A DNA stretch of 64,000 bases, from positions 13,407,305-13,471,304 of the forward strand of contig NC_068988.1 of NCBI RefSeq assembly GCF_001194135.2, written 5' to 3'. Source of the DNA: Octopus bimaculoides. Taxonomy: Eukaryota. A program made the translations under genes and the position numbers. Below the pieces are notes generated by a model, which was given only the letters and a program-made list of their open reading frames with translations, was not told the DNA's origin and did not search any database. The first letter of the stretch is position 1. Each line of letters starts with the position of its first letter. Shown one piece after another: positions 15,001 to 55,921 of the stretch.

Positions 15001-16824
15001 ACACTAATTTTAGCCAGCCAGACCAGTTTTGTACCTGGAAAACATGGTAGTGGGTGCTGGGATTAAAAAGACAATTAGAAAACAGAAATCAGTTACTGTA
15101 ATTGGAACAAGTACGTTAATTCATCTTTTGGGAGATAAATGAAATAAATAGCTTTAACAATCTTTGGTTAGTATTCACATTCACTGTCTATTTTAAATTT
15201 TGATTATATTACTATAATCACACTCAAACAAATGTGTTTGCATGTGTGTGTGTGTGTATAAAATGTGCCAGATATATTATAAATAGATGTTTACGGCTAT
15301 GTAATTATATTTTCTTTTTTTTTTTATTGCCTAACCAATTGTTTTTCAAGTTTATCCATCTATTTAAACTGTAGTCATTTTTCTGTGTGTGTGTGTGTAA
15401 TTGACAGGATTTCAATGTATGAGAAGTATGGATGTCAGTATTTGGAGTCCATTGACAATAAAGCTTTTGTCATGTTTTATTATCATTCCCCTGCCAATGC
15501 TTGTTAATTTCAATCACTTTGTGTGTGTGTATATACATAAATTCCAAATGACAAATTTAGAAGCAACACAGCTATGTTTAATATTCCATGTTTAAAAAAC
15601 AAAAAAAGTTTGCTATTTACTAAAATGAATGCAAAAGGTTATGTTTTACAATGTATTAAGCTATATTTAATACTTCGGTTGGGGTCCAGTGTTTCTGCTG
15701 GAGAAAGTAGTAATTTGCTGGAAGCATTTATGAACATTTAAGTCTGTTATTGATATTAATGAATGAATGACCATAGACTCTTTATGGTGTCTATAGAAAA
15801 TACCTTTTAGTGCATCATCTTTAAACTGATCTTTTTCCATTGGACTCTTTCTTTCAGAGGACAACAGCTTGCCACACAGATGCAGCAACAGAATCCAGAC
15901 TTAGTTGCACAGCTCCGCAGACAAGCTAACATTTTGAATGGAGAACAACAGACTAACTCTGGTTTGTGTTTCATTCATATAAATTCCTTTGTAAATGATT
16001 AAAAATGTGATTTAGAAAAAAGAATAAAAAATCGGAATTTATCAGATGTAATAATCAAGGGAGACAACTGCATTTGAATTAAGATTTATAACTAGTTGGA
16101 AGGGACACAAGTATTTTAATTTTACTCTTTTACTTATTTCAGTCATTTGAATATGGCTATGTTGGAGTACCGCCTTTAGTCGAGCAAATCGTCCCCAGGA
16201 CTTATTCTTTGTAAGCCTAGTACTTATTTTATCGGTCTTTTTTGCCGAACCGTTAAGTTACGGGGACGTAAACACACCAGCATCGGTTGTCAAGCGATGT
16301 TGAGGGGGACAAACATATACACACACACATATATATATATACGACGGGCTTCTTTCGGTTTCCGTCGACCAAATCCACTCACAAGGCTTTGGTCGGCCTG
16401 AGGCTATGGTAGAAGACGCTTGCCCAAGGTGCCATCCAGTGGGACTGAACCCGGAATCATGTGGTTGGTAAGCAAGCTACTTACCACACAGCCACTCCTA
16501 TTTTAATTTGATAGCATATAAACCGCCCCCTATCCCCCCCAAGAAATCTCGAACAATCGTTCTAGGTCCTGTATGCGAAGTTTGACTTCTCATAACTTTT
16601 AATGCACTAAAAAAAGGTCTTTCCCAGATATTTGTTGCTGAAATTGGGGTGCTTGTAATATGCTTGTCTTTTATGCCATCAAGTATTGCTGTGTGGAAAC
16701 TTTCTAGTTTTTAAATATGACTTTAAATTTAGACTTATTGATATGAAAGTATTAACAAAGATTGAATTGATCTGGATATTTTTTTTTTCCTTTTATTGCA
16801 GAAGAAACTGATAACAAAGAGTGA
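2989..16824 (+). CDS. SGTA/SGTB: Small glutamine-rich TPR-containing co-chaperone (SGT); spliced gene, 5'-truncated, 9 exons in window
   Basis: Joined exons total 741 nt = 246 aa + stop with consistent phases. The protein has 3 TPRs ([49 protein letters not shown]...SKAYGRMG...[18 protein letters not shown]), an NP-repeat region ([16 protein letters not shown]) and a Q-rich end ([20 protein letters not shown]). The N-terminal dimerisation domain was not found in the window. A vs B orthology cannot be resolved. Confidence 0.96.
3522..3621 (+). CDS. SGTA/SGTB: SGT exon, TPR1 ([34 protein letters not shown])
   Basis: tttacag acceptor, gtaact donor, 100 nt, phase 1 to 2. Confidence 0.96.
4579..5850 (-). 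mobile_element. 5'-truncated RTE-clade LINE (RT core, Cys/His finger, gap, 3' end with (GAT)n tail)
   Basis: ORF 5556..5879 carries [14 protein letters not shown] and LYADDLAL. 5432-5555 reads ...[28 protein letters not shown]. 4579-4883 is the 3' end with a (CAT)n tail on +. Linking across the N-gap is inferred. Confidence 0.88.
7126..7455 (-). mobile_element. SINE (same family as 16121)
   Basis: tacttgtttcagtcatttgactgcggccatgctggagc ... agaagacacttgcccaagg ... cttaccacacag. Confidence 0.8.
8077..8181 (+). CDS. SGTA/SGTB: SGT exon, TPR2 ([36 protein letters not shown])
   Basis: ttccag acceptor, gtgagt donor, 105 nt, phase 2 to 2. Confidence 0.96.
8627..8765 (+). CDS. SGTA/SGTB: SGT exon, TPR3 ([47 protein letters not shown])
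   Basis: ttttttag acceptor, gtgagt donor, 139 nt, phase 2 to 0. Confidence 0.96.
8808..8996. mobile_element. TTAA-flanked (piggyBac-like) MITE
   Basis: TTAA|CCCT...AGGG|TTAA; internally similar to 28046-28254. Confidence 0.75.
9578..10567. mobile_element. Non-autonomous foldback/MITE-like element with ~176-bp TIRs
   Basis: 9578-9753 is the reverse complement of 10391-10567 (about 7 substitutions + 1 indel). Termini CAG...CTG, ttttt on both flanks, 44-bp subrepeat in each arm. Confidence 0.75.
10640..10720 (+). CDS. SGTA/SGTB: SGT exon ([27 protein letters not shown])
   Basis: tctcatttcag acceptor, gtcagt donor, 81 nt, phase 0 to 0. Confidence 0.94.
11319..11700 (+). mobile_element. tRNA-head SINE with RTE-like 3' tail
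   Basis: Head gtgtggtaaagaagtttgc...gggttcagtc; tail ggcatctggctgtagaaattctgc resembles the RTE 3' end. Confidence 0.7.
12726..12763 (+). CDS. SGTA/SGTB: SGT exon ([13 protein letters not shown])
   Basis: gtttgcag acceptor, gtaagt donor, 38 nt, phase 0 to 2. Confidence 0.93.
13984..14052 (+). CDS. SGTA/SGTB: SGT exon ([24 protein letters not shown])
   Basis: atatctag acceptor, gttagt donor, 69 nt, phase 2 to 2. Confidence 0.92.
15858..15961 (+). CDS. SGTA/SGTB: SGT exon, Q-rich ([36 protein letters not shown])
   Basis: ctttcag acceptor, gtttgt donor, 104 nt, phase 2 to 1. Confidence 0.92.
16121..16499 (-). mobile_element. Full-length tRNA-head SINE (conserved central domains, internal (CA)/(TA) repeat, AGTAAAAG tail)
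   Basis: Minus strand begins aggagtggctgtgtggtaagtagcttgc...gggttcagtccc (A/B-box-like), then ccttgggcaag (CORE-like) and acgtccccgtaacttaacggttcggcaaaa (resembles the Nin domain); many homologous copies in the window. Confidence 0.88.
16802..16824 (+). CDS. SGT terminal coding exon (EETDNKE*)
   Basis: Long T tract plus ttattgcag acceptor; phase 1 matches the previous exon; TGA at 16822-16824. Too short to confirm by homology. Confidence 0.75.
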
Positions 16825-20900: not shown

Positions 20901-23900
20901 GAGTGGTAGAATGACTACAGATTATATGTTAGTAGAAGCTAGCAGCTCTTAACTAGGATTATCAACTTCAGAGTCTTGATGACAATAACTGTGCAATCAC
21001 CAAGTAGGAATTAACAAAGCCATACAATGAAAGAAACTGCATGATAAACAGCAGTTAAGTTAGTGTTAACACATTTGCCACTGGGAGCATTATAAAAAAT
21101 AATTATGAGATGACAAAAATTACTCAAGAGATAAATTTGCTTTAATTTGGCAAGTATGGGAGAATGCATATTTCAGTATTATCCTGGCCTCATCAGCAAA
21201 GAATAAGCTTCCATATTCCATATTTTGTACATTATTTACTTAAATATTATTGCTTTACTACTTCAGTAAGAATGGTAAAGTTCATGCTTTAATAATCAGG
21301 TCACAATAATTCCAAAATATGTCCAGAGTTGTCCCTCATTTGTTATTTAAAGCATTATTACTTTTGGTGTCAGTACACAATTATTTCAAATTAGTTATTT
21401 AAAAATGCTCCCAGCATTAAACATGTTAATACTAACTTAACCTAATAATAAAGATCTTGACTATCAAATGGTATTTAGAGAATCTCAACAGCCATTTTGT
21501 TATGGTACAAAACCAAAGTGGGGAAAAAAATGAATTTAGGAGAGTGTTCATCATTACGAAGCTGTTTTTGGAATATAAATTAGCATGAATTTTTAATGTA
21601 AGGTTTTAATTTAGATCTTAAAATAGTAAGGCAGCCTCAGGTATGTTGGTATTAAATGAGTTTAAAGGGGACACAACTACCAGGTCTTCATCAACAGCAC
21701 CAAGAAGCAGCCATCCACTAAATTCTAATCACAAGATATTGCTCAAACTGAAGTTTTGACAGAAGACATTTGTCCGAAGTTCAATATAGTGAGATCGAAC
21801 CCAGAACCTTTTGATAGTGAAGTAAACTTTGTAAACCACATAGCCACACCTGCTTCCATTATCTATCTATATAACAAAGCCAAAACCTGCATCTTCAATG
21901 CCAGAAATTACTTCATATCTGAGCAGCTGCTGACTCTATAGAATGCACAAGTGCAGCCAACGCTAGAGTGCTGTCTCATGCCTGGGAAGGAACAGCTGCT
22001 ACATGCATAAACATTGTAGATAACACAAAAAGGAAAAAAATGCCACCCAACTGAATGACAGGCATTCATTCGCATATTACAACCACTTGCACACCAAAGC
22101 ACTCAAAACACCCCCCACTGTCTCTTCTTCATCTATCATTACTACAATGGTTTCTCCAATTTTCTGAACTAGCTGGCTGTGTGCATCAGCACCACTGAAG
22201 CTCACTCTGTTTTTCAACCATTTCTTCTTTTTGTCATTTGTAACTGTGTCTCTCCACAAAACCTTGCACACATTTTCTAATGGGCATCAGTCTAACTTCA
22301 ACCATACCAGTGTGACATGGCATAGAAAAGTTATGACTACTCTCTTTACTTCTATGAACAAAAATGCAATATACCAAAACCCACATTCACATATACTATA
22401 TATATATACACATGATGGGGTGTCTAAAATTTCCTGGCTTTGAGTAAAAGAAAATACAAGAGGATCAGTTAATTATGATTTTATTCAACATATTCCTCTT
22501 TCAGATTCACACACATATTGCAGCAATCCTTCAGTTTTCTAAGCCCTGTAAAAAAAACTAGGATGGTTGGGCCTCCAACAAGGTTTTTTTGTGATACCTT
22601 TAAAGCCAAGAACTTTTCAGTACCTCCTCGTATATATATATCTCACAGCAGCAGCAGTGTTTTAATGTCCTCTTTTCTATGCTTGCATGAGTTGGATAGT
22701 AGTTTCTGAAATGGATTTTCTTTGGTTGGATGCTCTTCCTGTGACCAACTCTCACCTGTTTCCAAGTAAGGTTATATTTCCCATGACCAGACATGATTTG
22801 ATGGAAGATTGAAAATGAATATTCCCCCAATTGCATGAGAGTGACACCTATTTACAACATCGCATAATGTCAAGGCAAGGAGACAGTAGTGTGCGTGAGC
22901 ACACACACACACATATATATTCACATACATATATACATATATATATATACTACAGGCTTCTTTCAGTTTCCATCCACTAAATCTACTCACAAGGCTTTGA
23001 TTGACTTGAGGTTATAGTAGAAGACATTTGCCCAAGATGCCACACATTGGGTCTAAAGCCATAACTATGTGGTTGGGAAGCAAACGTCTTAACACAGCCA
23101 TAGATAGACAGACAGATAGACAAATAGTAGTGGGGGTGGGTGCGCTGAAAGTGTAGCTGCTAGAATAAGAATAGCCTGGGCAAAGTTTAGAGAGCTCTTA
23201 CCCCTGCTGGCGACAAAGGGACTCTCACTCAGAGTAAAAGGCAGACTGTATGACGCATGCGTACGAACAGCCATGCTACANNNNNNNNNNNNNNNNNNNN
23301 NNNNNNNNNNNNNNNNNNNNNNNNNNNNNNNNNNNNNNNNNNNNNNNNNNNNNNNNNNNNNNNNNNNNNNNNNNNNNNNNNNNNNNNNNNNNNNNNNNNN
23401 NNNNNNNNNNNNNNNNNNNNNNNNNNNNNNNNNNNNNNNNNNNNNNNNNNNNNNNNNNNNNNNNNNNNNNNNNNNNNNNNNNNNNNNNNNNNNNNNNNNN
23501 NNNNNNNNNNNNNNNNNNNNNNNNNNNNNNNNNNNNNNNNNNNNNNNNNNNNNNNNNNNNNNNNNNNNNNNNNNNNNNNNNNNNNNNNNNNNNNNNNNNN
23601 NNNNNNNNNNNNNNNNNNNNNNNNNNNNNNNNNNNNNNNNNNNNNNNNNNNNNNNNNNNNNNNNNNNNNNNNNNNNNNNNNNNNNNNNNNNNNNNNNNNN
23701 NNNNNNNNNNNNNNNNNNNNNNNNNNNNNNNNNNNNNNNNNNNNNNNNNNNNNNNNNNNNNNNNNNNNNNNNNNNNNNNNNNNNNNNNNNNNNNNNNNNN
23801 NNNNNNNNNNNNNNNNNNNNNNNNNNNNNNNNNNNNNNNNNNNNNNNNNNNNNNNNNNNNNNNNNNNNNNNNNNNNNNNNNNNNNNNNNNNNNNNNNNNN

Positions 23901-24055
23901 NNNNNNNNNNNNNNNNNNNNNNNNNNNNNNNTGTAGAAACTCTGCCAAATTAGACTGGAGCCTGGTGTTGCCATCCGGTTTCACCAGTCCTCAGTCAAAT
24001 CGTCCAACCCATGCTAGCATGGAAAGCGGACGTTAAACGATGATGATGATGATGA

Positions 24056-24097
<42 letters not shown>

Positions 24098-27000
24098 GAC
24101 TATGGAAGCATTACTAATAGCAGAATACAAGCCTAAATCAAACACACAGATACATTAAATGTAAAAAATATATAATTTCATGAAATCTACAAGGATTTAT
24201 CATTATATACTTTGAAATCCAGAGTTGAGGGTTTTATCAGTTTTAAAATTACTCCCAAGACTCTCTGTGCCTTACTGCATTAACCAGGAAACTTGAAGCC
24301 AGTCGAAGCGCATAACTTACATATCTGAAACAAAAAAAGAAGCTACAAGAGGCATTATTTGTGGTCTACTTACTTATCATCCTCATCTATGTCATTCATT
24401 TTGGTGACTGAATAAGAAACTGATGGCTCTAAACTGACATGGTCCATGAATATTGGACCTGGGGTAATATTCTGGATCTGTGCTTCTAAGTAAACTTCAT
24501 CTGACTGTAAAAAAAAAAAAAAAAAAGACAAATACAAAAAAAAATTATTTGAATAAGATTTTGATTAGATAACAAATAAAAACATAAAGGAAAAGACAAT
24601 ATTGACAGTAAAGATAAAGAATGTAAAATGAGAATTTCATTTTAATTATCTGTTTAATTATCTGTTTAGAGAGCTGGCAGAATCGTTAGCACACCGGCTG
24701 AAATGCTTAGTGGTATTTCACTGCTGTTATGTTCTGAGTTCAAATTCTGCCGAGGTTGGCTATGCCTTTCATCCTTTTGGGGTCTATTAAATAAGTACCA
24801 GTTATGCACCAGGGTCGATGTAATTGACTTAATCCCGTTTTCTGTCCTTGTTTGTCCCCTCTATGTTTAGTCCCCTGTAGGCAATAAAGAACTAAGAGAG
24901 AATTTCTGCAGAAAACTGTCTTCTTAAAATTTAAAGGATTTTCAACAGATCACTTGTGGTGTGTGCATGTAAAATAATAGAAACAATATTATTGTTTGCC
25001 ATTCTAATTTAGCAAAGTATAAATTTTTACAAAAATAATTTCAACAGACATACAGTGTGAATATAGATTGATTTGATTTATGTGTGTTCCTCCTATCAAC
25101 CAGATCAAATGTTCAAACAGATCAATGCTACCTTCACAATAGTAAGGTTTGATTTTCATTTAATATTATAATCACTGTCCATGTGCTTCTGTGTAATTAG
25201 CAATAGTAAAATTATTACTTTATAGCACATTTTTTATTGGTCAGTGCCAACATTCACACACTAGGGAGTGTTGCACAGCTGGAGTGAGCAGAAGGTAAAA
25301 TAATTAATGAACTTAACTATCCAACATTTTTTCTCTCCAGACTCCACAGCTAACTCTAAAGAACTGCCAGTAGCCAATGGCTTTGTGTTGTAAGATAATC
25401 CAGTTACTAACATATAGAAATATATAGTAAACAATTGTAAACATTATCCTTAATATTCTTTCCTTATCTAGCAGCAAAATGGGAGAGTTACAGATTTATT
25501 ATATCTTGTTTCACTTTCAATTAAACAACAGGTGATATAATGAAGAGTTACAATGGCCAATGTTCTGGTTATTTTTGTGAAAAGTCATGGTTCATTTGCT
25601 TGATTGTTTTTTTATTTGTTGTTTGAGAATGGAAAGCTTCATTAAAGATAATTTTTCTTTATTCATAGAGTGAAATAACATGGGTAAAAACCAGTTGTGT
25701 ATTATTGTTCAGTCTGAATAACACTCCAGCCAAACTGCAGCACTGTGTTCCGAATAAGGCCCTGATAATTCACCTGCCTCTAATATCTGACAATATCACA
25801 AAAAAAAAGAAAATAAATGAGAGAGAGGAGAGAGATTTTGTTGATGGATTTCAGCAAATGGTTAGATGGTTCACAGTGATTGGATGAAGATATAGGGCAG
25901 GGGGAACTTCAATATAAACACTCAGCTAAGGTTTGCTCCACTTCCTGATAGAAACTGTATTGATCCGATATAACCATTTCTGATATGCTAACACTCATAT
26001 TTTATGGCTATGCACTAGGTTGGGCTTCTTTCAGAGTGGAGGCATTAAAAAATAGGAAGGAAAAGACGAAAATGTAAAAAACCCATCAAAACAAATTAAA
26101 GCAACAGCAACAAAAAAACAAAGAAAAAAAGCACCATTGTTTATATGAAAGTGAAACAAGATATAATAAATCTGTAACTCTCCCATTTTGCTGCTAGATA
26201 AGGAAAGAATATTAAGGATAATGTTTACAATTGTTTACTATATATTTCTATATGTTAGTAACTGGATTATCTTACAACACAAAGCCATTGGCTACTGGCA
26301 GTTCTTTAGAGTTAGCTGTGGAGTCTGGAGAGAAAAAATGTTGGATAGTTAAATTCATTAATTATTTTACCTTCTGCTCACTCCAGCTGTGCAACACTCC
26401 TTAGTGTGTGAATGTTGGCACTGACAGAAACAAAAAATTACAAAAATATAGAAGGAAGAACTGAAACTATTATTATTATTATTGTTGTTGTTGTTGTAAT
26501 GAGAATGAAGTTGATGATGACAGGCATGTGTGATATATTTTCTGATTATATATATATATATATTTTCAAGTAAATGGAATCTGTTTTCCCTCTTAGATTG
26601 AATAACCATCCCTTATGAAGTCATTGCTCTTGGTAAATGTCATAAAAGTGTTAAGATTTTATAGCCTGTATAGATTATAGGAGTTATTATAACTTGCTAT
26701 TACTTTTTCTTTTCTTCAGAATCTATGATAGTTATGTTTAAAGCAGAGAGAAAATGCAGTAAAAAAAAATGACTTTAACACCTGGAGCACGTACAAGATG
26801 TAATTATGTATAAATAACTAGAATGGGACCTAACATTGTTTACTGGAAAGTGCGAAAAAGGGGAACTTATATGTGTGTGTTTGTGTGTGCGTGTGTATGT
26901 TATCTCCTACAGAGACATGACAGGCAGACACATATTCTTTGAGAGATACAAGAAATCTAAATTAGTGAAGGCATATGTTCCAAGAGATCAACATTAGTGT

Positions 27001-30000
27001 ATACAAAAGAAGTATGGAAAGAGGTGTTGATTTCAATAAAAATAATAGTTGATGGAGCAGAAGAGGAGCAGGGTAGAGGTGGGGATGAGTTTCAAGCAAA
27101 TGAGAGACAATCACACTTTTGATTACAATCCAAAACTGATGTTGCCGCCAACCATACACTCACTATTTTTACATTAGGAAAAACTGCACATAAAAGTCCT
27201 TTAACACCTTTGTAGTTAACTGTTTCCTATGCCATCAAATATTTACTCTTTCAAGGCCCTAGTAATACTATGTATCATTATTAAAACTATATGAAACTTT
27301 TATCGCAAGACTGCAACTTTAAAAGTGCACACTAATTCTACCTTTATTCATTTAGCAGAATTCAATTCTGCAGATGTCTGAACAAGCCCTAGATTTAGTT
27401 CGATATTTTATTAGTCAAATCTGGTTTAAAAACGTTCCTTCCCAACCATATAGTTTCAAATTCAGTCTCATTGCATGTGGTGCCTTTGGCAAGTGTCTTT
27501 TACTATAGTTCTGGGTCAACAAAAACCTTGTGAGTGGATTTGGTAGATGGAAAATGAAAGAAACTTGTGTCCCTTTTGTCTTGACATTATATGTACTCTC
27601 AGAATAACACAAAGGAATAGAAGAACATTTAATCAAAACTTGGTAATGGCTTTAAATGGTAATTCCACACACACACATACACCACAGGCATCTTCAGGGT
27701 TTCTATCAACCAATTTTATTCACAAGTTATCAGTTAACCTGAAGTTATAGTAGAAGACACTTGCCCAAGGTGCCATGCAGTATGACAGAGCTCCAAACCA
27801 CATCACTCCGTAACCATATAACCATGCCAGAACCAAATAATAGTTAGAAAGAGCCAACAAGAAGTAATCGTTCCAATGAATGTGTTTTATTTTCTTGAAA
27901 TTTTATACTTGAATCAGAACAATTTGTTTGAAAACAAGAACACAACTTATCACAAGATATGTTAATCAAGGCTTCCTTTTCTGATTCTGGTGTCATGTAG
28001 ATATTTTGAATTTATTTAAAAGATATAGAGTTGAAACACCATTAACCCTCTTGATATCAAATGCCTGAGATCACTCCTGGTTCTATAACACTTTTCCTGT
28101 TCTAAATTAAAATCTTCCATCAAAATTTCCAGTTAATTTATGTTGCAAACATCAGCTTAATAAGAACAAAGCTATTTTACTGACTTCTTCATTATTTTCA
28201 GAATTAGTTGAAACAAATCTATTGTATTTCAATAGAAATATGATAACAAAAAGGTTAATATATGTAATCATTATTGAAGACAGACCTGTTGTGTTTGTGG
28301 TAATTTATCCAGGTTTCAAATTTACAAAAATTGATATTAAGATATTATCGTAAACAGAAAAAAAAAAAAAAAATTATAGTTCAAAGTCACAAATAAAAAT
28401 ATCAAAACCTTTTCAATATCAGATATCAGATATTCCATTCCATTTGATAAAAATGAATAGATCCAAGCTTATTAACAACAAAGTGAATAAAGGTATTCTA
28501 AAAATTATTCTAAGTAAAGCTATGTAAGCAGATAAATAAACAAACAAAAATTTACAGTATTTTCAAGAGAACTAGAATACAAATAATCTAGTTTTAACTG
28601 AGTCTTGATTATTTTTTGTTTAATGAAACAATGTCTTCTCGAGAAAATGCATCTTGTGAAACATTGAATTAAGCAAAAGACTTTCAAATTAAATAACTAT
28701 GAAGCAGTTCTGGAAATATACTTTTCTCCTTGATGCATGTAACTATTATTTGAGAAACGAGGTTTGTGGGATAGCATGGATTGTTAGTATATTTGCTATT
28801 GATCTTGGTGAAAGGCAATGTTGATGTTGAGTGAGGCAAAAACGAATGATGTGCAATGTTAGAACTGCCACGGTTGAAGTAGGAACATCATTTGAGAAAC
28901 AATCCATCAACGATATTAAGATGGAAAAATGAACAAAGAACAAAGGTCTAATTGAACATTGTGTTCAGAAAACTCTAGATAATGGAGATTCTGTTTTTGT
29001 TTTCTTTACAACACATTTAAGAATAAATTGAAAAACAAAAACAAACGAGTAAAAAAAATAAATAAATAAAAGATTCTTTCGAATGACTTTAATCTTTATT
29101 GAGTTAGATATTACATTATTATCAATTCTACATTGTATTGAAGCCATTTAATCAATCAAATGAAACTCAAAGTAAAGGTGGTGGCAAAGATGATGATGAT
29201 GATGACGATGATGACGACAACACTGATGATGATGACAACAACGAGGATGATGATGGTGGTGGTGGTGGTGGTGGTGGTAACGCTACAGCTGCCACAACCA
29301 CTGCCAACACCACACCACCGCTATTATCATTAGCATTATTGTTTTTATGTCCTCAAAAGTAATAATAATTATGTTTTATTATTTGTAAATTAGTAATTAA
29401 AACATTCTAATATTCCAAGGAATTTTCAAATAATTCTATGTTAGTTTGCACAGTTTTATCTATTTGATATAGCAATCTGTGAGCTGCAGCATCACAGGTT
29501 ACTGGTTTCCAATGAGTCAATAACTGGTGTATGGCATTCTTAACAACGAGAGTAACAAAGAAAATCTGTGTCTCAGCAAAAAAAGAAACATTGCTTGGCT
29601 GTTGACTAATTTGTTGGGTTACTAGTCCCTAAGATTACAATGTTTAACCCTTTAGCATTTAAACTGGCCATATCCTGCCCAAATACTCCACCTGTTTTTA
29701 TGTTCAAACCATCCAGATTTTGCCTCTCACACTTACCTTACAATGTCATTCTAAGAATAAAACAATTTCATCATCGAAATCTCAAAGCTATGAGATAACA
29801 TAAATAATTCAAAACAATGTGAATAAATAAGCAGAAGATTTGACACAGAAATCTGAATGCTAAAGGGTTAAATTGATCCAAAACATTTTGGTCTACCTTT
29901 TATTTAACTGTTTGACATTCAAATTACTCTGCCAAATGTAATGTTTATTTTTTTCACATTGTTTTGAATTAATCATATACCATCTCATAGCTTCCAGATT

Positions 30001-32892
30001 TTGATGATGTGATTGTTTATTTTTAGAATGACATTGTAGGGAAGGTGTGAGAGGCCAGATCTTTCTGATTTGAACATGAAACAAGTAGTAAATTTGGGTC
30101 AGATATGGTCAGTTTAAGTGCTAAAAGGTTAAGGCACATTAAATAAGTTATGCGGTCTACCATATGGAAATCGGAACTATTCACACTAAACTACCTGCAT
30201 CAGTTGTTAGCTGCCGGGCCATTGCATCCTTTAAAACCTCCATGCTTCCTGAAATTCGCCAACACTACATCTGAAATCCTCACCTCCATATGCATGCACA
30301 CATGTATATCATGGCTCTTACACTGTTCGCTTTCCTGACTTTTGAACATAATTCTATGTACTGTACATACACCTTTGATGAGTTGTAGTGCATCTGAACA
30401 CTATACACAATAATTTCATCATTATTATTATTATTATTATTATTATTTCAAGTTAGAAGTTTTTGTAAGTAAAAAAAGGAAGGATCCAACAAGAAAACAT
30501 TTATTTTAGACTATGCATGTATGGAGAGAGAAAGGTGAGCGTGTGTGTGTGTGTGTGTGTGTGCGTGTATACACGTACATATATACATACAACACATGTA
30601 TATGTTCTGAATTCAAGTTATTCCACTATGTGCACTTTGGGTACACACCTTCTACTAGAGGTTTTGGGAGTAAAATTGGGTTGGTGGAAACCATATGGAA
30701 ATCTACAAGATGACTATTTATAATTCAAAGGTTTGGCTTTGTCATAGACTGATTCTACCTACAGGTTACGTTAAATAGTCTAAGTGTTTATGGAATAGCC
30801 AGCCACTAATATTGTAATACAACTGATGAGGAGTTTTATTGTTCAAACAACTGCAATACTTATTGTTGAGATTACTGAGAGGGCCATTTACTTGTGCATT
30901 CACATGCATGTTTCCACATGTGAAGCAACATAATAAGAAAACTGAATAAGATTGAATTGGAATATACTGTTCAGAAATCCGATATTTAATCAATTAAGCT
31001 ATGTTAAGATTCCTGATATGGAGAACTTTACCAATGCATGATAACAAGCAGATTTGAATACACAAGTGAAAAATTATACTCCTTTTATCTTTATCCCCGA
31101 TCCTGTAATATTAATGGAATGTTGCTAATTATCCCAGATCACACAGGAAGCATTCATAATACCAGTGTAAAAGAGCAGATGCTATACTTTAATTTGCCAT
31201 GGCAAGATTAGGTTTGCAGCCATTTCCTCAATGGAAACCAGGCTATAATATGTAAAAGTCTGACATTTTTATATACAGCCTCCAAGTATAATTATAGACA
31301 TGCCAATATTGATTTCAGTGATATGTTTTGGTTACAATTAAGAAAATATTATTCTAATGTAGACTACACAGCAGGCCCTGTTGACCGTATAATTTCAATT
31401 AATGATAATAATTGCTGAGAAAATATAGGTATAGGATCTAGTTAATGGTTGTAGGATTAAATTACTAGATGGATAAGAAAAAAAAAAAATCTCCAAGAAA
31501 CAAAACAAACAAAAAAACCTAACAAACAATAATCCCAAATGATATCAATAAAAAACTAGATCCTCAACTTTATTTGTTAACCACACAAGTCTAATGGTTA
31601 TTGACCCAATGTTATGTAAATCAAGTAGTTGTGGCATAGTTCACAGAACTGGTCAGCCTGGACAACTGACTACAGATTAAACGTATAATGTGAATTGACC
31701 ATAGCAATTACTAATAAATAGTTAATTAGCTTACTTCAAATTGATTACTTATTGAACAACATTAAGGCCATCATTGATTTATGTACTTCGATAGAGTTAT
31801 TTCCAATAGCCTTACTTAAATGCTTTCTAAATTCTCAACTCTTAAGTCTAAGTTGTAAAGAAACAAATTGATTACCTATAATAACATTAAAAATACAATA
31901 ACAAACAAGCCAAAAAAGTCAATCCTTCCACGTGGCTGGCATTTCATTGCAGTTTCTGTATTATTTAGTGGACAAAAGATGAATCTTCCTCTGTATAAAA
32001 CATTAGCCCATTGTACATAATCTCATCAGAATAAAGTGAGTGTGTTACAACTAGAGGCAATTTAATGCTTGATTGGTTATATTCTAGAAGAAAGAGTATA
32101 ACAACCTAAAAGAAATCTAATGCTTGATGTATTGTAGGTAACCTCGCTAGAATAAAATATACTGCAACCTAGAGAGAAGTGATCTATTGTAGGTAAGAAT
32201 TTCTCTACAATAAAGTGTATTACAGCCTAGAAGCAATTTAACACTTGATCCATTATAGGTAACATTGCCAGAATAAAGATTGCTACAAACTAGAGGCAAT
32301 TTAATGCCTGACACGAAATCACAAATGAGCTGGCAGTCCATTCCTTTAACAACTTAGTTATTTCACCTGTAATTCAAAAACAATGAAATTAAGAACCAAC
32401 CATTCAAAAATTTCTTCTATAGTAACTCTGGAAGATAAATAAAATACATGGGGGTTTCTCTAGAAGAAAGAAGCAATCTGAATTGGCAAGACAAAATATG
32501 AGTTAATCACCAGTCAAACATAAGAACAGCTGCTGAAAGTTATCGATCTCTTCCTGTCCTAATTATAAAACTGTGTGGGTTCTAAAACAGACTCTGAAAC
32601 ACACAATTCTCTTCGAAGCATCTTAATGTCTTCACTGAAAAATTTTCAAATATAACCAAATTGGATGGATATCTTAAAAAGAATAAAAACCTAAAAATGT
32701 TGCTTAGAGTTTGATCATGTGTGTTTTAAGTATCCTTTGATAATCTTTTTTTTTTTAACAAAATACTACTTAATAATCAGGATGGTATATGTGTGTGTGT
32801 GTGTGTGTATGTAAAGTAAAATTTGTTAAATAATAGTTTCAAAGTAATACATCTCAGAGTTGAATTATGGAAAATGTATAATTCATCTAACT

Positions 32893-32924
<32 letters not shown>

Positions 32925-33152
32925 CAAATGGTTAAGAAGTTCACTTTGCAGTCATATGGTCCTGGGTCCAATCCATTTGCATGGCATTTTGAGTAGATGC
33001 CACTTTTTCTAGTGTTGGGTAGACCCATACCTTGTAAATAAAATTGGAGTGACAGAAACTGGATAGAAGACCATTGTGTAGAGTGCAACTCTAATTTAAA
33101 AGGTATAGCCATGTCAGATTTTATGTCATGCTTTTTACACCTAATAATTATG

Positions 33153-33195
<43 letters not shown>

Positions 33196-36100
33196 ACTAC
33201 CTTTTAGCCGCTATTGTTCCCAGGTCTATGCTGACTGGAAGTAGTAGCACCTGTCAGGGCTCCCACTACAGGTTAACTAGCATATATGATAATAATCCAT
33301 CTGAGTGCAGGGATGCAGATATACCTTTGGTTAGTGACAGAAAGCACAGTAAAACCGATGGGAGTGAGGGAACCCCAGCTATGACAACAGATAAGAGAGG
33401 GACACTCTGATGTAAAATCGCATGACTACTGGTCATCTTGATTCAGCCTGTCACTAGATACTAACCACAGAGGCTCAGAGAGTGGTATGCGTGTTGTGCA
33501 AGTGTTTGTCACTATAATCCAGTGATGTACAGATGGTTCTTTATGGTGACCTCATTTGTCATTTCATCCACTGAAAGTCCAATGTCAATAGAAAGGTAGT
33601 GATGTGTGCAGGCCTAATCAGTTGGAAGCATACATATAAGTTACAGCTTTCATCTGTCACTTATGCTTTAAACAATACATATCTACAGCAGGACTGAATA
33701 GTCATCTGAGAGGTCATGGATGGGAAGCCAGAAATGCCATTGGCAATGAGAAAGCATAAAGAGATAACAATCATCAGTGAAGGTGGAGCAACCACCATAT
33801 AAATATATCATCATCATTTTAGCATCCACTTTTCCATGCTTTCATGGGTCAGACAAAATTTCTCAAGAGAAAATTTTGTATGGTTGGATGACTTATTTGA
33901 CATGAGAGGGAAAGAAGTCCATTACTGATGATTGAGAAGATATTAAGTAAAAGTGTGTTTACTGATTTTAAATCTGATAATGATGATTTTTATTAGCTAT
34001 AAGTGTTCCCATGATCCTCTGTAGCCTGCTACAAAGAGCACAAACATTCTGCTGATGAGACTGATCAAAGTCTTGAAATTTTTATGGGTTAATAGATTTA
34101 GAAATGCTATTGTTCTAAACTAAACATTAAGGACTAATAAGGAAATATGAAAACTCTTAATAATAAAAAAAGATTAAAATTGAATAGAGTTGTGGCTCTA
34201 ATATAACAGGTTTAAAAGAAAATCTGTTCATTATTTTTACTCTCACAGTTGTGTGTGTGTGTGTGTGTGTGTGTGTACATATATAATAGGAGCAGGCATG
34301 GCTGTGTGGTAAGAAGTTTGCTTCTCAGCTACATGGTTTTGGGTTCAGTCCCACTGCATGGCACCTTGGGCAAGTGTTTTCTACTATAGCCTTGAGCTGA
34401 CCAAAGGTTTGTGAGTGGATATGGTATATGGAAACTGAAAGAAGCCCATCAGGTATATATATATATATATNNNNNNNNNNNNNNNNNNNNNNNNNNNNNN
34501 NNNNNNNNNNNNNNNNNNNNNNNNNNNNNNNNNNNNNNNNNNNNNNNNNNNNNNNNNNNNNNNNNNNNNNNNNNNNNNNNNNNNNNNNNNNNNNNNNNNN
34601 NNNNNNNNNNNNNNNNNNNTATATATATATATATTAGCCTGCTAACCTAGCCAGCAGGGTGGTGTCATTTGAAGGTTAAAACAATGCAAAAACGCATTGT
34701 GACCAACGATGTGTAACAACATCTGGCAGCCTGGTTGGTCATGTGATATCTATCTATCTATATATGAATGTATGTGTGCATGGGCATGTGTAATACTCTC
34801 TCCTTGAATTGACATCATGTGATAGTTGTCATGCAAGCAGTGACTTTTGCTTCCAATCTTCCATGAAAATGTGTCTGGCCATGAAGAAATGTTACCTTAC
34901 TTGGAAGCAAGTGAATGTTGGTGACAGGAAGGGCATCCAGCCATAGAAAGACTGCATCAGCAAATTCTGTCTGACCCATGCAAGCATGGGAAAGTGGGTG
35001 TTGAAATGATGATGACAATGATGATGATACATGTGCATACACACCAACACATATACATATATATCTTTCACTTGTTTCAGTCATTAAGTTGGAACAAGTA
35101 ATAGTAACCATTCAAGAGAGTGCCGGAATACTGCCTTGAACATCTTTACTTCTTTTCTTATTCATAATAAATCCAGTACCTACTTTTTAAAAAGTCTGGT
35201 ACTTAATTTAGCAATATATATTTATCACACTGCTAAATTACAGGACATAAGCAGACAGCAATAAACACATACAAACATAGACACAGGCACACATACCTAT
35301 GTGGTCAAGCCACTCAAAGTCATAAATCTGAATGTTAGCGCATTTAATTTATAACTGAATCCAACAAGATCTTTGCATTTTGCCTGAAGAATCCTTGGTA
35401 GTAAACATCACAGTTTTAGGTTTGTTAGGAACAGCACAAGTAGTTCCAAACAAGCCTATGAGTAGCTAATCTATGTACTGGGACTCACAGTTAGGGATTA
35501 AATATATAAATTTTATTTTGAGAGAGAGAGAGAGAGAGAGAGATGTCTAAGTTAAGAATTAAATAAACAAGATCTCCAAAATTGTCTGAAAAGAGATTCT
35601 CTCTCCTCTGATGACATATTTCCCTGCCAAGGGGCNNNNNNNNNNCCCCCCCCCCCCTCCCTTCCCCAACACACACATGTATCAGACTCTTTAGTTCATG
35701 ATGATTTTAGTTTACAAACACATATTGCAAAAGTCATGTGCAACAACTGAGCAATGAAATGTAAATTCAAAGATAAAGCTTTATAACATAAACATTAACA
35801 TCCTGTCTGTTCTTTTCATAAAGCAAATTATAATTACTATAAATTGTGATAACTAGTTTTTACAAAAAATTTTAAGTGTTATGGTTTTTAAGTATTATTT
35901 TCATGTTAAATACATTAATCCATGTTAATTAAATTCAGTCTCTTATGAAAAATTTGCTTCCTTTGAAATTCTTTTCTAATTCATAACAAATGAATGGCAC
36001 TGATAGCATTTCCTTTTCTCTGTGTAATCCATTCAATAAATGATGGTCTTTTTTTAACCTCATATTAAACCAATATCACTACATAATGAGAAAAGTTCCT

Positions 36101-39100
36101 AAAATTATTTTAAAATTAACACAGCATTTATTATATGTGATCTATTTATAGCCAGTTGGCCATCTGACTTGATTTTGGTGATTATTAAACAAAAGATGAC
36201 AAACTGAACATTTAAGTATGAGACGGATGAAATTCTTTGAAATTTAGACAACCCTGGTTTTGCGGGGAGAAAAGCGATAATTGTAGTGTTAATAGGTTTT
36301 CTAGAATTATATTCTAAGTAAATGATGTATTATCAGACTCAGTAATTTGTAAGTTTATTATTTAATTTAAAATTACTTCAAGCTATAGCTAGGTTCATTT
36401 TGGATAGAATGTGATTTTTTTTTGCTTTTACACAATATTTTAAGATTGATGTTTAAAGCAAAAATGTTAGACAAGAGTCCTTGTTGTTGATGTGTGAGTT
36501 AGTGTTTGATGTCACTGTTATCTGTGATGTGCTTTGGTCACTGCTAATGCTCTTGACACTGTTAATTATTTTTACCTACTCGTATTCTCTTTGTTTCAAG
36601 ATATAGAGTAAATGCAAATAGCAAGACAGATTTCTATTTCTATTTTCTACATCAGGTCTTGTTTTAGTTTGCTTTGCATTTTAACGTTTCTGCTGCCATT
36701 GCACCCTCTCCTATCTCCTATAGCCACCAATATAAAAGTACATGACTTAGGTCACTAAGTACTCTCTATACACTTACACACTTGTTCCTTTTACATACCA
36801 ATTGTGGCCTTTCTGCCATCATAGTACTCTCGCTTTAGCAGAGATGGCATTGGTTTGTGAGCCCCTTTAGAATAGTCCTTTTAAGGACTTAACTCTCTAG
36901 GATTGTTGCCACAAGAAAACACACCTAGTGCAATCTGTAAAGCTGTTGGCAATAGGAAAGGTATTCATCCATAGAAACTAAACCAAATGGTACATTTGAC
37001 CACTAATCTATGAGAGCAATGACTCCCAATCAGAAATGACTTGAACTGTGATGGCCCATCTAACCTATGCTAGCATGGGAAATGGACATAAATTGATGAT
37101 GATGAGACAAAAGAAAGATTTCTACAGAATGAAATGAAAGATTGACTGTAATATAATTGATTACTTTGAACAAATTGGATAGGGGCACTGCTAACCAAAA
37201 GAAATAAAAGTCTTTTCAAGGTTTTATAATTATAACATGTCAAATATTTTAATTTTAGATTTCAGTATCAATGAAAAATCGAATAAGAAATATAGGCCAG
37301 TTCCCCACCATTTACATCTACAACTTTACTGTAATTAAGTTAATACTAATAATAATGAACATTGAAATAATTAAAAATATTGCAAAATTCAAAATGGAAA
37401 TGAAAAAAAGTCCATATTTTTCCTTCCATTTTCTTTCTTTCTCTCATTTTTTTTTCCAATTAAAAAATATATTTAGACATTCAACTCCATTATTTAATAG
37501 CAGTAGTTTAAATATGAAAAGTTATTTTTAGACCAAAGTATGAGACCATGACAAGAATTAAAAGATCAATGTTTTACTGGCCGTTTTACCCCATTTGAAA
37601 TCATTCCCCTCTACTCTTTCTAATGTGTTTATTGTCTCATGACAGTTATGCATAATAAAACAAATTCAGTTAAGTTTAATTTTCTCTGATCCTCATTTAG
37701 CATAAATCTATTTTTAGAAACTAATAACTTTTATCTTTATAATTTGCTCTCTCTTTCACCACTTAAAACTATATGCTTCATTGCACACTATTTCCCCACC
37801 TTCAGCACATGGACATCAGATTAAACTGTTCTTTCTGTGTAAGTACAGAAGGGAAAAAAGAAAATTCCATTTAAACCAAGATTAATAATGTGCATCTAAA
37901 GCCAAGCATTAAAAAAACATGTAAAAAGTGTCAATTAGTGACCAGGTTTGGCTGTTGGCCAATGGAAAGGAATCCAACACATAACAACCACCACCACCAC
38001 CACCACCACCACTGCATCTGGTTGTCATTAAGTATTTATTGCTGCTTCCCCCTGGACATAACATTACTTCTGAGATTATGCTTCAGTGTGGTGGCAATCT
38101 GTTGTTGATTATCTTTTTGAAAATAAATACTATCAATTAGCACAGAGAGAGAGAGAGGCTGTTAACATTAATTGATTCATCAATGTTTGTTTTATACTAA
38201 TGGAGCTTTAATATTTATGTATTTTATATTGCATTTTGTGAACAATAGTATCATTGGTCAAGTTTATGAGGGGCCAATCATTGGTTCATGACATTTTCAA
38301 TAGCAAGAGTGACAAGGAAGTTATCTGAGCAACTTGTGCAGAATAAATACCACAATATTATTTTTTGTTTGAAAGCAGCAGTTTATCAGATTTCTCACCA
38401 ATGTCCACACCCTTTGCTGCTGTATATTGTTTAAATATATACATATTCATGCACACACACACAGCACATTCACATATACAGTAGGATTCCATACAGTTTA
38501 CAAGTTGCTCAGATAACTTCCTTGTCACTCTTGCTATTGAAAATGTCATGAATCAGTGATTGGCCTCTCATAAACTTAACCAACGATACTATTGCTCACA
38601 AAAAATGCAATATAAAATACATAAATATTAAAGCACCGTTAGTATAAAACAAACAATGATGAATCAATTCTATATAGTTTACATATATAACATTCCACTC
38701 TCATATTAGTTGGACAGTAAGAGGCTATTGTAGAAGACACATGCCCATAGTGTAATACAGTGAGATTGAATATGGAACAACAATAAAGTGAATTTGGTAG
38801 ATAAAATCTGCCTGAAGTTATGTATGTGTCCATCCATGCCTGTTTTTATGTTTAACACTGGTCAAAAAAAGGAAATGCTGATGTTATTTATGCTGTGTCC
38901 CTTTACATCTTATAAACTAGTGGATTGATAAAATAAGTACTGGGCTATAGGCATGGCTGTGAGGTTAAAAGTTTGCTCCCAAACCACATGGTTTCAAGTT
39001 CAGTCACACTGTATGACACCTTGGGTAGGTGTCTTCTACTACGGCCCCAGGACAATCAAAGCTTTGTGAGTGGATTCAGTAGATGAAAACTGAAAGATGC

Positions 39101-39142
<42 letters not shown>

Positions 39143-55123: not shown

Positions 55124-55921
55124 CTGTTAATGCAAAATAAAGGATTTTTATAATTTGCTCTTCATACAAAAAACAAAAGTTTCATTATAACTGAAAAATT
55201 AATCAATTCAAACTTAACTTGCACATTTAGTGGTATCTTGTAACTGAAAGGGTTGATTTGCTACAATCAACCCTTTACATCATTAAGTTTATTGTAAATA
55301 ATTAATTTGAAACCTGTTCTTTTAAAAGATATTCTATAACTATAGTAACAGTAAGGTAGATTTCTGAGTGTATAGAAGATGCAAGTATGGCTGTGTGGTT
55401 AACAAGTTTGTATCCCAACTACATAGTTTCAGGTTCCGTCCCACTACATGGCACTTTCAGCAATGCCCCAGGCCAACCACAACTTTGTAAGTGGATTTGA
55501 TAGATGTGAAGTGAAAGAAGCCAAATATACCGTAAAAACCCATGTAACACGCACATTTTTTCACAAAAATAAAAATAAACTAGGGGGTGCGTAAATTACA
55601 TGAGTAGATTGTTTCCTGAAATTTTTTAGGAATTTTTTTTTGTTGAAAAAAGATGTACAAAATGTAAACATTCATACCGGAAGTTGACTCATTTAATGGG
55701 CTTAAATATAATGAAGTTGACTTATTTATACTGGACAGTATAATGCTTGCATTTTCTGTATAAATTTACTAAAACCATTAAATGGTTAACTTCTTTTTGA
55801 AATTTGACATTCATTCTGGTAATCACGGTTTGGGCCATATTTTACATACTTTACTCTGTTAAGTGTCATCCAAACTGATGTTTATTGGTGGATAATGAGA
55901 ATTATAAAAATATGTTTTTAT

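Follow-up and report, generated by a model that had tools for sequence, protein, structure and literature searches.

The window analysed here, a stretch of 64,000 nucleotides of the Octopus bimaculoides genome, carries exons of TRAPPC13 on its minus strand, recognised by Pfam as TRAPPC13_N, TRAPPC13_M and TRAPPC13_C. We mapped the exons by tblastn, and the junction KFYNAE/SDEVYLEAQ is found in the RefSeq proteins of O. bimaculoides and O. sinensis. This protein junction, together with the splice sites, delimits an intron at 24505-42486, inside which lies a long inverted repeat. The original prediction had described the repeat as intronic, and the minus-strand Pfam exons, the RefSeq protein junction and the GT/AG sites confirm this placement. 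The features of the locus, in window coordinates, are the following:

24374-24504, minus strand: downstream exon (SDEVYLEAQ...DIDEDDK), TRAPPC13_M (Pfam E=3.5e-13; tblastn)
24505-42486, minus strand: host intron of TRAPPC13, 17,982 nt, with GT at 42486-42485 and AG at 24506-24505, between codons 188 and 189 of the RefSeq protein
25240-25519, minus strand: 3' arm of the hairpin, with a weak extension to 25230-25528
25520-26145, minus strand: spacer (loop) of 626 nt, without coding or known RNA signal
26146-26425, minus strand: arm on the 5' side of the hairpin (TRAPPC13 pre-mRNA), pairing with the 3' arm at 278/280 positions, with a weak extension to 26137-26435
42487-42531, minus strand: upstream exon (RefSeq protein junction, splice site)

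The repeat is situated 735 nt upstream of the 3' splice site. We identified full-length TRAPPC13 proteins in O. sinensis, O. bimaculoides and Argonauta hians, in which the gene extends over 262 to 332 kb, and our literature search returned no paper naming both TRAPPC13 and octopus.

Structure of the inverted repeat

A base-by-base comparison found exactly two non-complementary positions between the arms, G25264/T26401 and C25312/A26353, in agreement with the arm limits, the two differences and the 626-nt spacer originally reported. On the TRAPPC13 (minus) strand these become one A.C mismatch and one G.U wobble, again as predicted, and a four-arm alignment with the orthologous copy described below assigns both window-specific differences (25264 and 25312) to the 3' arm. 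Under looser criteria the inverted repeat extends to 25230-25528 and 26137-26435, with arms of 299 nt that are 97% complementary and 608 nt between them. The whole structure thus covers about 1.2 kb, and a 280-nt repeat with two mismatches cannot have arisen by chance. No assembly gap falls within it, the closest one being at 23281-23931.

Arms and spacer gave only chance-level matches of 11-25 nt when compared with the whole 64-kb window by sensitive blastn, that is, no second copy was present. Sub-repeats were not found either, and no direct repeat of 2-10 bp flanked the element in the window or in O. vulgaris, whether its arms were taken as 280 nt or as 299-302 nt long, the best 8-mer comparison at the candidate element boundaries having 4/8 matching positions. 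The blastn and boundary comparisons therefore uphold the original description of a repeat without target-site duplication, sub-repeats or similar repeats in the window. Each arm has a short A-rich run at its outward end.

We found no coding or structured RNA content in the repeat. The spacer ORFs had no Pfam match, the arms showed no similarity to exons in the window, and six translated ORFs of arms and spacer retrieved nothing at E<=10 from a database of 5.8 billion proteins in which the proteomes of O. sinensis, O. bimaculoides and O. vulgaris are represented. The lack of a protein match argues against an origin of the arms from a coding gene; on copy number this search is uninformative, as the known O. 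vulgaris copy itself has no called ORF. Rfam 15, run on 24300-27500, had no match within the inverted repeat, its sole hit being a sub-threshold U8 on the exon (25.8 bits against 41, E=0.069), and a scan for tRNAs revealed neither a tRNA nor a tRNA-like region in the repeat. An exact 26-mer that is invariant in all four arms had 0 matches in the JGI metagenomes. A hAT/ZBED5-like ORF in the TRAPPC13 intron, suggested by the O. vulgaris gene model, was absent among the window ORFs tested.

The same repeat, with the same boundaries, occupies the orthologous site in O. vulgaris, where it lies within a collinear 5.4-kb alignment to chromosome OX597821.1, 11.8-13 kb from the stop codon of a neighbouring SGTA-like gene. 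Its arms, at positions 6810-7111 (5' arm) and 7678-7979 (3' arm) of that locus, are 302 nt long and 96% complementary. They differ from each other at about 9/281 positions overall but at only 3/256 in the inner part, the outer 25 nt having decayed. The O. vulgaris assembly was built from ONT long reads (PMC10700109). The arm identity of 99.3% in the window could be taken as the mark of a very recent inverted duplication or of a mis-assembly, but both become hardly credible in view of the O. vulgaris copy, which has identical boundaries and comes from an independently made long-read assembly. The very recent duplication put forward in the original prediction is thus refuted, as are the mis-assembly and the individual-specific repeat that it had allowed for, the copy being present in a second Octopus species. 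It follows that the repeat is older than the split of the two species, which corresponds to about 4.7% neutral divergence.

Beyond these two species, we looked for an inverted repeat of at least 60 nt upstream of the homologous TRAPPC13 exon in three more distant animals, one represented by a locus from Logan run SRR25445049 (2.4 kb examined) and two by loci from ENA (about 6 kb each), and found none in the 2.4-6 kb covered. For the SRR25445049 locus, the only distant one compared by sequence, the exon could be aligned and the intron could not.

Concerted change between the arms

The two arms of the window differ from each other at 2/280 positions, fewer than the 5/280 and 12/280 substitutions that separate the orthologous arms of the window and O. 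vulgaris. Such higher identity within the genome than between species, a comparison proposed in the original prediction, is the pattern that concerted evolution would leave in the window. In the four-arm alignment, three substitutions and one mirrored 1-nt indel separate the two species in both arms alike, while no site in the core has an arm-specific state common to both species; with two species compared, the four concerted sites are unpolarised. An independent count with RNAalifold also gave three pairs in which both partners had changed (U-A/A-U, C-G/U-A and A-U/C-G).

We simulated arms descending from a perfect ancestor and evolving independently at the observed neutral rate, with the 4.7% divergence assumed to be split equally between the lineages. 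Three or more concerted substitutions arose with P=7e-4, and two or fewer arm differences in the window with P=2e-4. Pooled arm-to-arm differences were 11 against 26.3 expected (P=6e-4), and the inner 256 nt of O. vulgaris had 3 against 12 expected (P=0.002, assuming equal lineage rates). These sequence comparisons reject an independent evolution of the two arms (P about 7e-4), which implies that the arms would have been homogenised after the species split. Gene conversion from arm to arm would account most simply for this homogenisation, and the three two-sided substitutions, the mirrored indel and the absence of orthology-type sites support the original suggestion that conversion kept the arms alike.

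Arm-to-arm gene conversion is well established in palindromes (PMC3403216). The TRAPPC13 repeat shares with the palindromes of the primate Y chromosome the inverted arms, a unique spacer, an arm identity that is higher within a genome than between species, and changes found in both arms of one lineage. It differs from them in being about a thousand-fold smaller, autosomal, intronic and gene-free, and in its incomplete homogenisation in O. vulgaris. The arms of the primate Y-chromosome palindromes measure from 9 kb to 1.45 Mb, and arms of 0.3 kb are near the lower length limit usually thought efficient for gene conversion.

The original prediction had also considered that selection might keep the stem perfect, and the hairpin could then be an RNA element whose pairing is maintained by compensatory evolution for ADAR recruitment or titration, for TRAPPC13 splicing or intron turnover, or for small RNAs. 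Its conservation in two species, with three compensatory pairs and a mirrored indel, would fit such a role, and so would the internal mismatches, all of which are transitions (G.U or A.C) in both species. Taken singly, the 5' arm has accumulated fewer substitutions than the flanks (1.8% as opposed to 4.7%, P=0.024 without correction), which leaves room for mild constraint on that arm. Nevertheless, the arms overall have diverged by 3.0% and the spacer by 5.3%, about the neutral rate given by the flanking intron (4.7%, 194/4134), and arms and flanks differ only at Fisher P=0.08. Around nine arm differences are tolerated in O. vulgaris, including those of the decayed outer 25 nt. Moreover, no wobble intermediate exists for two of the three compensated changes, which are transversions and fit copying from one arm to the other better than stepwise compensation. 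With transitions making up about 75% of the flank substitutions, mismatches that are all transitions can be expected by chance. The lack of an inverted repeat of at least 60 nt in the 2.4-6 kb covered upstream of the homologous exon in the three more distant animals, of any match of the arms to a window exon, a protein or an Rfam family, and of a detectable endo-siRNA pathway across molluscs (PMC12479628) points the same way. We therefore regard a stem kept by selection as quite improbable, and the original suggestion of it as unsupported. Still less probable is an Octopus-specific functional intronic dsRNA of about 290 bp whose pairing would be maintained by gene conversion and selection together; it could serve, for example, as a local site of ADAR recruitment or titration or as a regulator of the processing of the 18-kb TRAPPC13 intron, and it would account for the three compensatory pairs, for internal mismatches that are all transitions, and for a 5' arm that has diverged so little.

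Part of the signal could have been produced by the assembly. If an assembler or gap closer had merged the reads of both arms of a real repeat, the near-perfection in the window would be largely artificial, and the true arms would be about as diverged as those of O. vulgaris, reflecting plain decay without notable gene conversion. The window does come from a fragmented short-read assembly, with nine N-runs in 64 kb, and the O. bimaculoides assembly consists of 713,915 contigs (PMC10700109). The arms have common canonical k-mers, so that their differences resemble heterozygous bubbles to an assembler, and copying one arm onto the other would create concerted sites automatically. In addition, every difference between the window arms is found no further than about 75 nt from an arm boundary, where single reads reach unique sequence, a clustering that is compatible with a collapse in mid-arm, yet not significant. 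However, the same assembly resolves arm divergences of 4% and 6% in two other long inverted repeats of the window, and the compensated pair closest to the inner end of the arms (alignment column 273, 26 nt from the spacer) could be anchored by single reads in each arm separately. The long-read O. vulgaris assembly likewise has few differences in the inner 256 nt of its arms, as counted above under equal rates. A collapse of this kind is thus unlikely, although it is the alternative to gene conversion that we take most seriously. The first of the two other repeats, a younger element at 9579-10565, keeps its 4% arm divergence, which indicates that the assembler resolves diverged arms and that the 0.7% arm divergence of the TRAPPC13 repeat is probably real. 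Apparent inverted-repeat matches at 34450-34641 proved to be an artefact of an N-run.

Origin of the repeat and its expected fate as RNA

The 987-bp element at 9579-10565 is flanked by a target-site duplication of 8 bp, and the orthologous position in O. vulgaris is empty; on this sequence evidence the element is demonstrably mobile, a lineage-specific transposon insertion. Such non-autonomous DNA transposons with long terminal inverted repeats (TIRs), of foldback or MITE-like type, are built like the TRAPPC13 repeat: they span about 1-1.2 kb, have arms measuring 175-300 nt on either side of some 600 nt of spacer, and lack coding capacity. Arms of 280-299 nt that are 97-99% complementary are what terminal inverted repeats of this kind would look like. 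In contrast to the element at 9579-10565, the TRAPPC13 repeat lacks a target-site duplication, shares no terminal motif with that element and occurs as a single copy in the searched sequence, and its orthologous site in O. vulgaris is filled; as it predates the species split, a target-site duplication may have decayed. The inverted repeat may nevertheless have originated as a transposon, because further copies could easily be missed in a sample of 64 kb and the window contains a similar long-TIR element that is mobile.

The arms might instead be two independent interspersed repeats, such as SINEs, inserted head-to-head. The short outward A-rich run on each arm would agree with this, as would the fact that repeats make up about 66% of Octopus genomes (PMC13282606). 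Nonetheless, no further copy of the arms was found in the 64-kb window, the 28.7-kb O. vulgaris locus or the SRR25445049 locus, whereas a real abundant repeat was seen four times. Furthermore, the arms have neither target-site duplications of their own nor a tRNA-like head, and they were identical at the species split (0 arm-specific shared sites), which would be rare for two independent insertions. We consider such a pair very improbable.

Taken jointly, the data fit best, and with fair probability, an old neutral foldback repeat whose arms were homogenised by conversion and which would be an incidental substrate for ADAR as dsRNA. A foldback repeat of about 1.2 kb, with arms of about 300 nt and a spacer of about 600 nt, would have been fixed in the 18-kb TRAPPC13 intron before the split of O. 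bimaculoides and O. vulgaris, having arisen either as a non-autonomous long-TIR DNA transposon or by a local inverted duplication. Its later evolution would have been essentially neutral, apart from the homogenisation of the arms, which would have been repeatedly overwritten by each other through intrachromosomal gene conversion, strongly in the lineage of the window and, in O. vulgaris, over the inner 255 nt or so. Since the repeat is inside an intron that is presumably transcribed, given its position within the gene, the pre-mRNA would form a hairpin with a stem of some 290 bp, on which ADAR hyper-editing is to be expected as a side effect until the intron decays.

From the predicted stem of about 290 bp, a long and near-perfect duplex in a region whose transcription is deduced from its intronic position, we infer that dsRNA would form in vivo and be edited, and ADAR editing of this duplex is plausible. 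The predicted folding energy of the stem is -621.5 kcal/mol in the window and -595.3 kcal/mol in O. vulgaris. Across animals, including O. bimaculoides, the main ADAR targets are young repeats with a nearby inverted copy (PMC9989829). The situation is similar to that of the inverted Alu pairs of human introns and 3' UTRs, which are hyper-edited by ADAR1, in that a long intramolecular dsRNA would be produced by nearby inverted copies in a transcribed gene. The TRAPPC13 arms, however, are outside any recognisable abundant family, and their predicted duplex (about 280-300 bp, with two mismatches) is much more perfect than that of typical Alu pairs.

A role of the hairpin in feeding Dicer is unlikely in molluscs. 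The hpRNAs of Drosophila originate from a protein-coding gene, which they also target, and they depend on a specialised siRNA pathway with Dicer and Ago2. Like the TRAPPC13 repeat, these loci are fast-evolving, long and near-perfect inverted repeats with a loop (PMC10317233, PMC10292708). The arms of the TRAPPC13 repeat, unlike those of hpRNAs, match no gene, homology to a target being absent both among the window exons and among the 5.8 billion proteins at E<=10. A survey that covered 32 molluscs and kept a specimen of O. bimaculoides among its animals reported no evidence of endo-siRNAs (PMC12479628), which makes the feeding of Dicer less likely.

Nothing we found shows the repeat to be more than a neutral foldback with dsRNA as a by-product. 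The results have no bearing on protein recoding and leave the existing knowledge of TRAPPC13 unchanged. If the favoured reading is true, the locus would provide a small and clean example of an inverted repeat in an autosomal intron whose arms, just about 0.3 kb long, evolve in concert, and near-perfect long hairpins in cephalopod introns would need to be neither young nor selected. This would call for caution when repeats are dated, or functional dsRNAs nominated, by the identity of their arms. At the same time, the TRAPPC13 repeat offers a well-delimited candidate locus for the action of octopus ADAR on a long and perfect intramolecular duplex.

Structure and placement of the repeat

The arms of the inverted repeat (25240-25519 and 26146-26425) are complementary at 278 of 280 positions, as first described, and differ in this core only at G25264/T26401 and C25312/A26353; once a few end mismatches are allowed, the repeat extends to 299 nt at 97% (25230-25528 versus 26137-26435). 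No assembly gap lies within it, the closest being at 23281-23931. A blastn search of the window (word size 7) with the arm and the spacer gave only chance-level matches of 11-25 nt, in agreement with the original prediction that it resembles no other repeat in the window. No target duplication, known terminal motif, coding remnant or Rfam match was found for the repeat, no gene similarity was found for the arms, and no second copy was found in the window or in the O. vulgaris and L002 (a more distant animal) TRAPPC13 loci compared.

Exons of TRAPPC13 (Pfam matches) and of its neighbor
54992-55126 and 43861-43935, minus strand: TRAPPC13_N exons
42487-42531, minus strand: exon starting TRAPPC13_M
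24374-24504, minus strand: exon continuing TRAPPC13_M
near 18.1-18.7 kb, minus strand: TRAPPC13_C exons
8021-8182, 8613-8771 and about 10640-10726, plus strand: SGTA/SGTB-like TPR co-chaperone gene, convergent with and downstream of TRAPPC13

Because KFYNAE is joined directly to SDEVYLEAQ in the TRAPPC13 of both O. sinensis and O. bimaculoides (RefSeq), and matching splice signals are present in the window (GT, 42486-42485; AG, 24506-24505), the repeat lies within a 17,982-nt intron, its 3' arm (25240-25519 in the sense of the transcript) ending 735 nt upstream of the acceptor site. Exon map, protein junction and splice signals thus agree with the intronic placement originally proposed.

The U8 snoRNA model of Rfam gave a hit below threshold on the plus strand at 24367-24505, antisense to the TRAPPC13_M exon (25.8 bits versus a gathering score of 41, E=0.069), most likely by chance. 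The TRAPPC13 gene extends over 262-332 kb in O. sinensis, O. bimaculoides and Argonauta hians, with an SBF-domain gene nested on the opposite strand, and the GenBank annotation of O. vulgaris divides it into two models, one fused to a FAM200/ZBED5-like domain. The SGTA-like neighbor is also found in O. vulgaris, A. hians and L004 (the locus of a more distant animal), and the pairing matches the human TRAPPC13-SGTB arrangement. In the literature collection searched, TRAPPC13 and octopus were not mentioned in the same paper.

Concerted evolution of the arms

The O. vulgaris TRAPPC13 locus (L001, OX597821.1:101421583-101450329), reached through a fragment protein of that species (P0001), aligns collinearly with the window (30029-24666, minus strand, versus L001 3164-8544). 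It contains an inverted repeat with arms at L001 6810-7111 and 7678-7979 (302 nt, 96% complementary) around a 566-nt spacer, and the outer and inner boundaries are identical in both species. The O. vulgaris assembly was produced from ONT long reads with linked-read polishing (PMC10700109); the orthologous repeat therefore excludes a mis-assembly, an individual-specific variant and the very recent inverted duplication contemplated in the original prediction. In three more distant animals, the stretch examined upstream of the homologous exon, 2.4 kb for L002 and ~6 kb for L003 and L004, contains no inverted repeat of at least 60 nt. Relative to the window, O. vulgaris has insertions of 1.25 kb between the repeat and the next exon (L001 8544-9800) and of 2.5 kb in the following intron (L001 12109-14586), the latter with a copy of a ~380-bp interspersed repeat.

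When the four arms were aligned (two per species, both 3' arms reverse-complemented), no site of the 280-nt core had each arm keeping its own ancestral state in both species. The arms were therefore essentially identical at the species split, and the repeat either arose shortly before it, by under roughly one quarter of the time elapsed since, or was already being homogenized. A 1-nt indel in a T/A run and three substitutions set the window arms as a pair apart from the O. vulgaris pair, and RNAalifold on the two full hairpins, independently of the arm alignment, identified three pairs in which both partners had changed (U-A/A-U, C-G/U-A and A-U/C-G). The other differences affect a single arm: two are in the 3' arm of the window, while in O. 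vulgaris the 5' arm has one or two and the 3' arm about eight, six of the O. vulgaris arm differences being grouped in the outer 25 nt.

In simulations that started from a perfect ancestral repeat, the four arms evolved independently of one another, each lineage receiving half of the substitution divergence of the flanking intron (194/4134, 4.7%). At least three concerted substitutions occurred in 0.07% of runs, and two arm differences or fewer, the window value, in 0.02%. Pooled over both species, 11 arm-arm differences were observed against 26.3 expected (P=6e-4), independently of how divergence is split between lineages; for the inner 256 nt of O. vulgaris alone there were 3 against 12, assuming equal lineage rates (P=0.002). 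The original suggestion that gene conversion keeps the arms alike is thus supported by the concerted substitutions, the mirrored indel and the rejection of independent evolution.

Mid-arm differences could have been merged in the short-read assembly of the window, which has nine N-runs in 64 kb (the O. bimaculoides assembly comprises 713,915 contigs; PMC10700109). The arms share canonical k-mers, so that differences between them resemble heterozygous bubbles, and no called window difference is more than about 75 nt away from an arm boundary. However, divergences of 4% and 6% were resolved between the arms of two other inverted repeats in the same assembly, single reads could anchor the compensated pair located 26 nt from the spacer in each arm, and the long-read O. 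vulgaris assembly has the same tendency over the inner arms, all of which weighs against a large artefact.

Stepwise compensatory selection, by which the stem would be held perfect for its pairing, is unsupported. Arm divergence between species is 5/280 and 12/280 (3.0% together) and that of the spacer 5.3%. Arms versus flanks gave P=0.08, and the 5' arm (26146-26425) alone, less diverged than the flanks, an uncorrected P=0.024. The spacer is clearly neutral; the arms, if slower, are only mildly so, and may be under mild constraint in this two-species comparison. Against selection, six true mismatches and three wobbles are tolerated in the O. vulgaris stem, transversions, which have no G.U intermediate, account for two of the three compensated changes, and the 1-nt indel is mirrored across both arms. 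Together with the near-neutral rate, these features fit copy-paste homogenization better. Gene conversion between palindrome arms is well known (PMC3403216); here, one arm would be overwritten from the other, which would keep them alike.

Origin and neighboring inverted repeats

N-run artefacts excepted, the window has two further long inverted repeats; apparent perfect palindromes at 34450-34641 are artefacts of an N-run (34471-34619) with TA-repeat flanks.

Other long inverted repeats (repeat finder)
9580-9753 and 10391-10564: 174-nt arms, 96%, 637-nt spacer
38171-38337 and 38500-38669: arms of ~168 nt, 94%, 162-nt spacer, within the 18-kb intron of TRAPPC13 that also contains the main repeat; no evident target duplication; orthologous region outside L001

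The first belongs to a 987-bp element (9579-10565) with TIRs of ~175 nt (96%) and internal sub-repeats, flanked by the 8-bp direct repeat TGTTTTTC (9571-9578 and 10566-10573). O. vulgaris lacks the element at the orthologous position and has the 8-mer only once there (L001 27133-27140). The element is a long-TIR DNA transposon whose insertion, into an intron of the SGTA-like gene, is lineage-specific; a duplication of this length is consistent with hAT, P or Merlin. Foldback-like repeats of similar size are thus common in this genome and mobile, and their copy number can be so low that 64 kb shows only one. Of the claim that the TRAPPC13 repeat is unique, non-transposon sequence, the lack of a second copy in the window stands, but the argument from uniqueness loses its force beside such elements. 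The O. vulgaris genome is rich in TIR elements (PMC13282606), and the repeat may be either a transposon relic or a local inverted duplication. That its arms were two independent SINE insertions is unlikely, given their identity at the species split and the lack of per-arm duplications and of other copies in the loci compared.

Truly abundant families are visible at this scale, as four copies or fragments of the ~380-bp interspersed repeat are present in the window (27488-27568, 16125-16499, 10024-10186 and 7129-7311), all matching L001 13883-14262. An ORF at 5559-5915 (minus strand) with an RVT_1 reverse-transcriptase domain (E=1.1e-11) is a retroelement fragment adjoining an assembly gap.

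Predicted fold and its fate

The minus-strand transcript is predicted to form a stem of ~290 bp (-621.5 kcal/mol for the window sequence, -595.3 kcal/mol for that of O. vulgaris), and the window stem has the one A.C mismatch and one G.U wobble originally expected. In Metazoa including O. bimaculoides, the primary targets of A-to-I editing are evolutionarily young repeats with a nearby inverted copy (PMC9989829), so that hyper-editing would be the expected fate of this intron segment and ADAR editing of the duplex is plausible. The further proposal that the hairpin feeds Dicer is unlikely, as is an hpRNA role, because a survey covering 32 molluscs, which suggested editing as the route by which dsRNA is resolved, yielded no evidence of endo-siRNAs (PMC12479628), and because the arms match no exon in the window and their ORFs no protein at E<=10 in a collection of 5.8 billion.

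The repeat is a fresh instance of known phenomena: a foldback repeat within an intron, whose arms have evolved in concert. It warns against taking arm identity for a sign of recent origin or of function, and provides a defined test locus for octopus ADAR.
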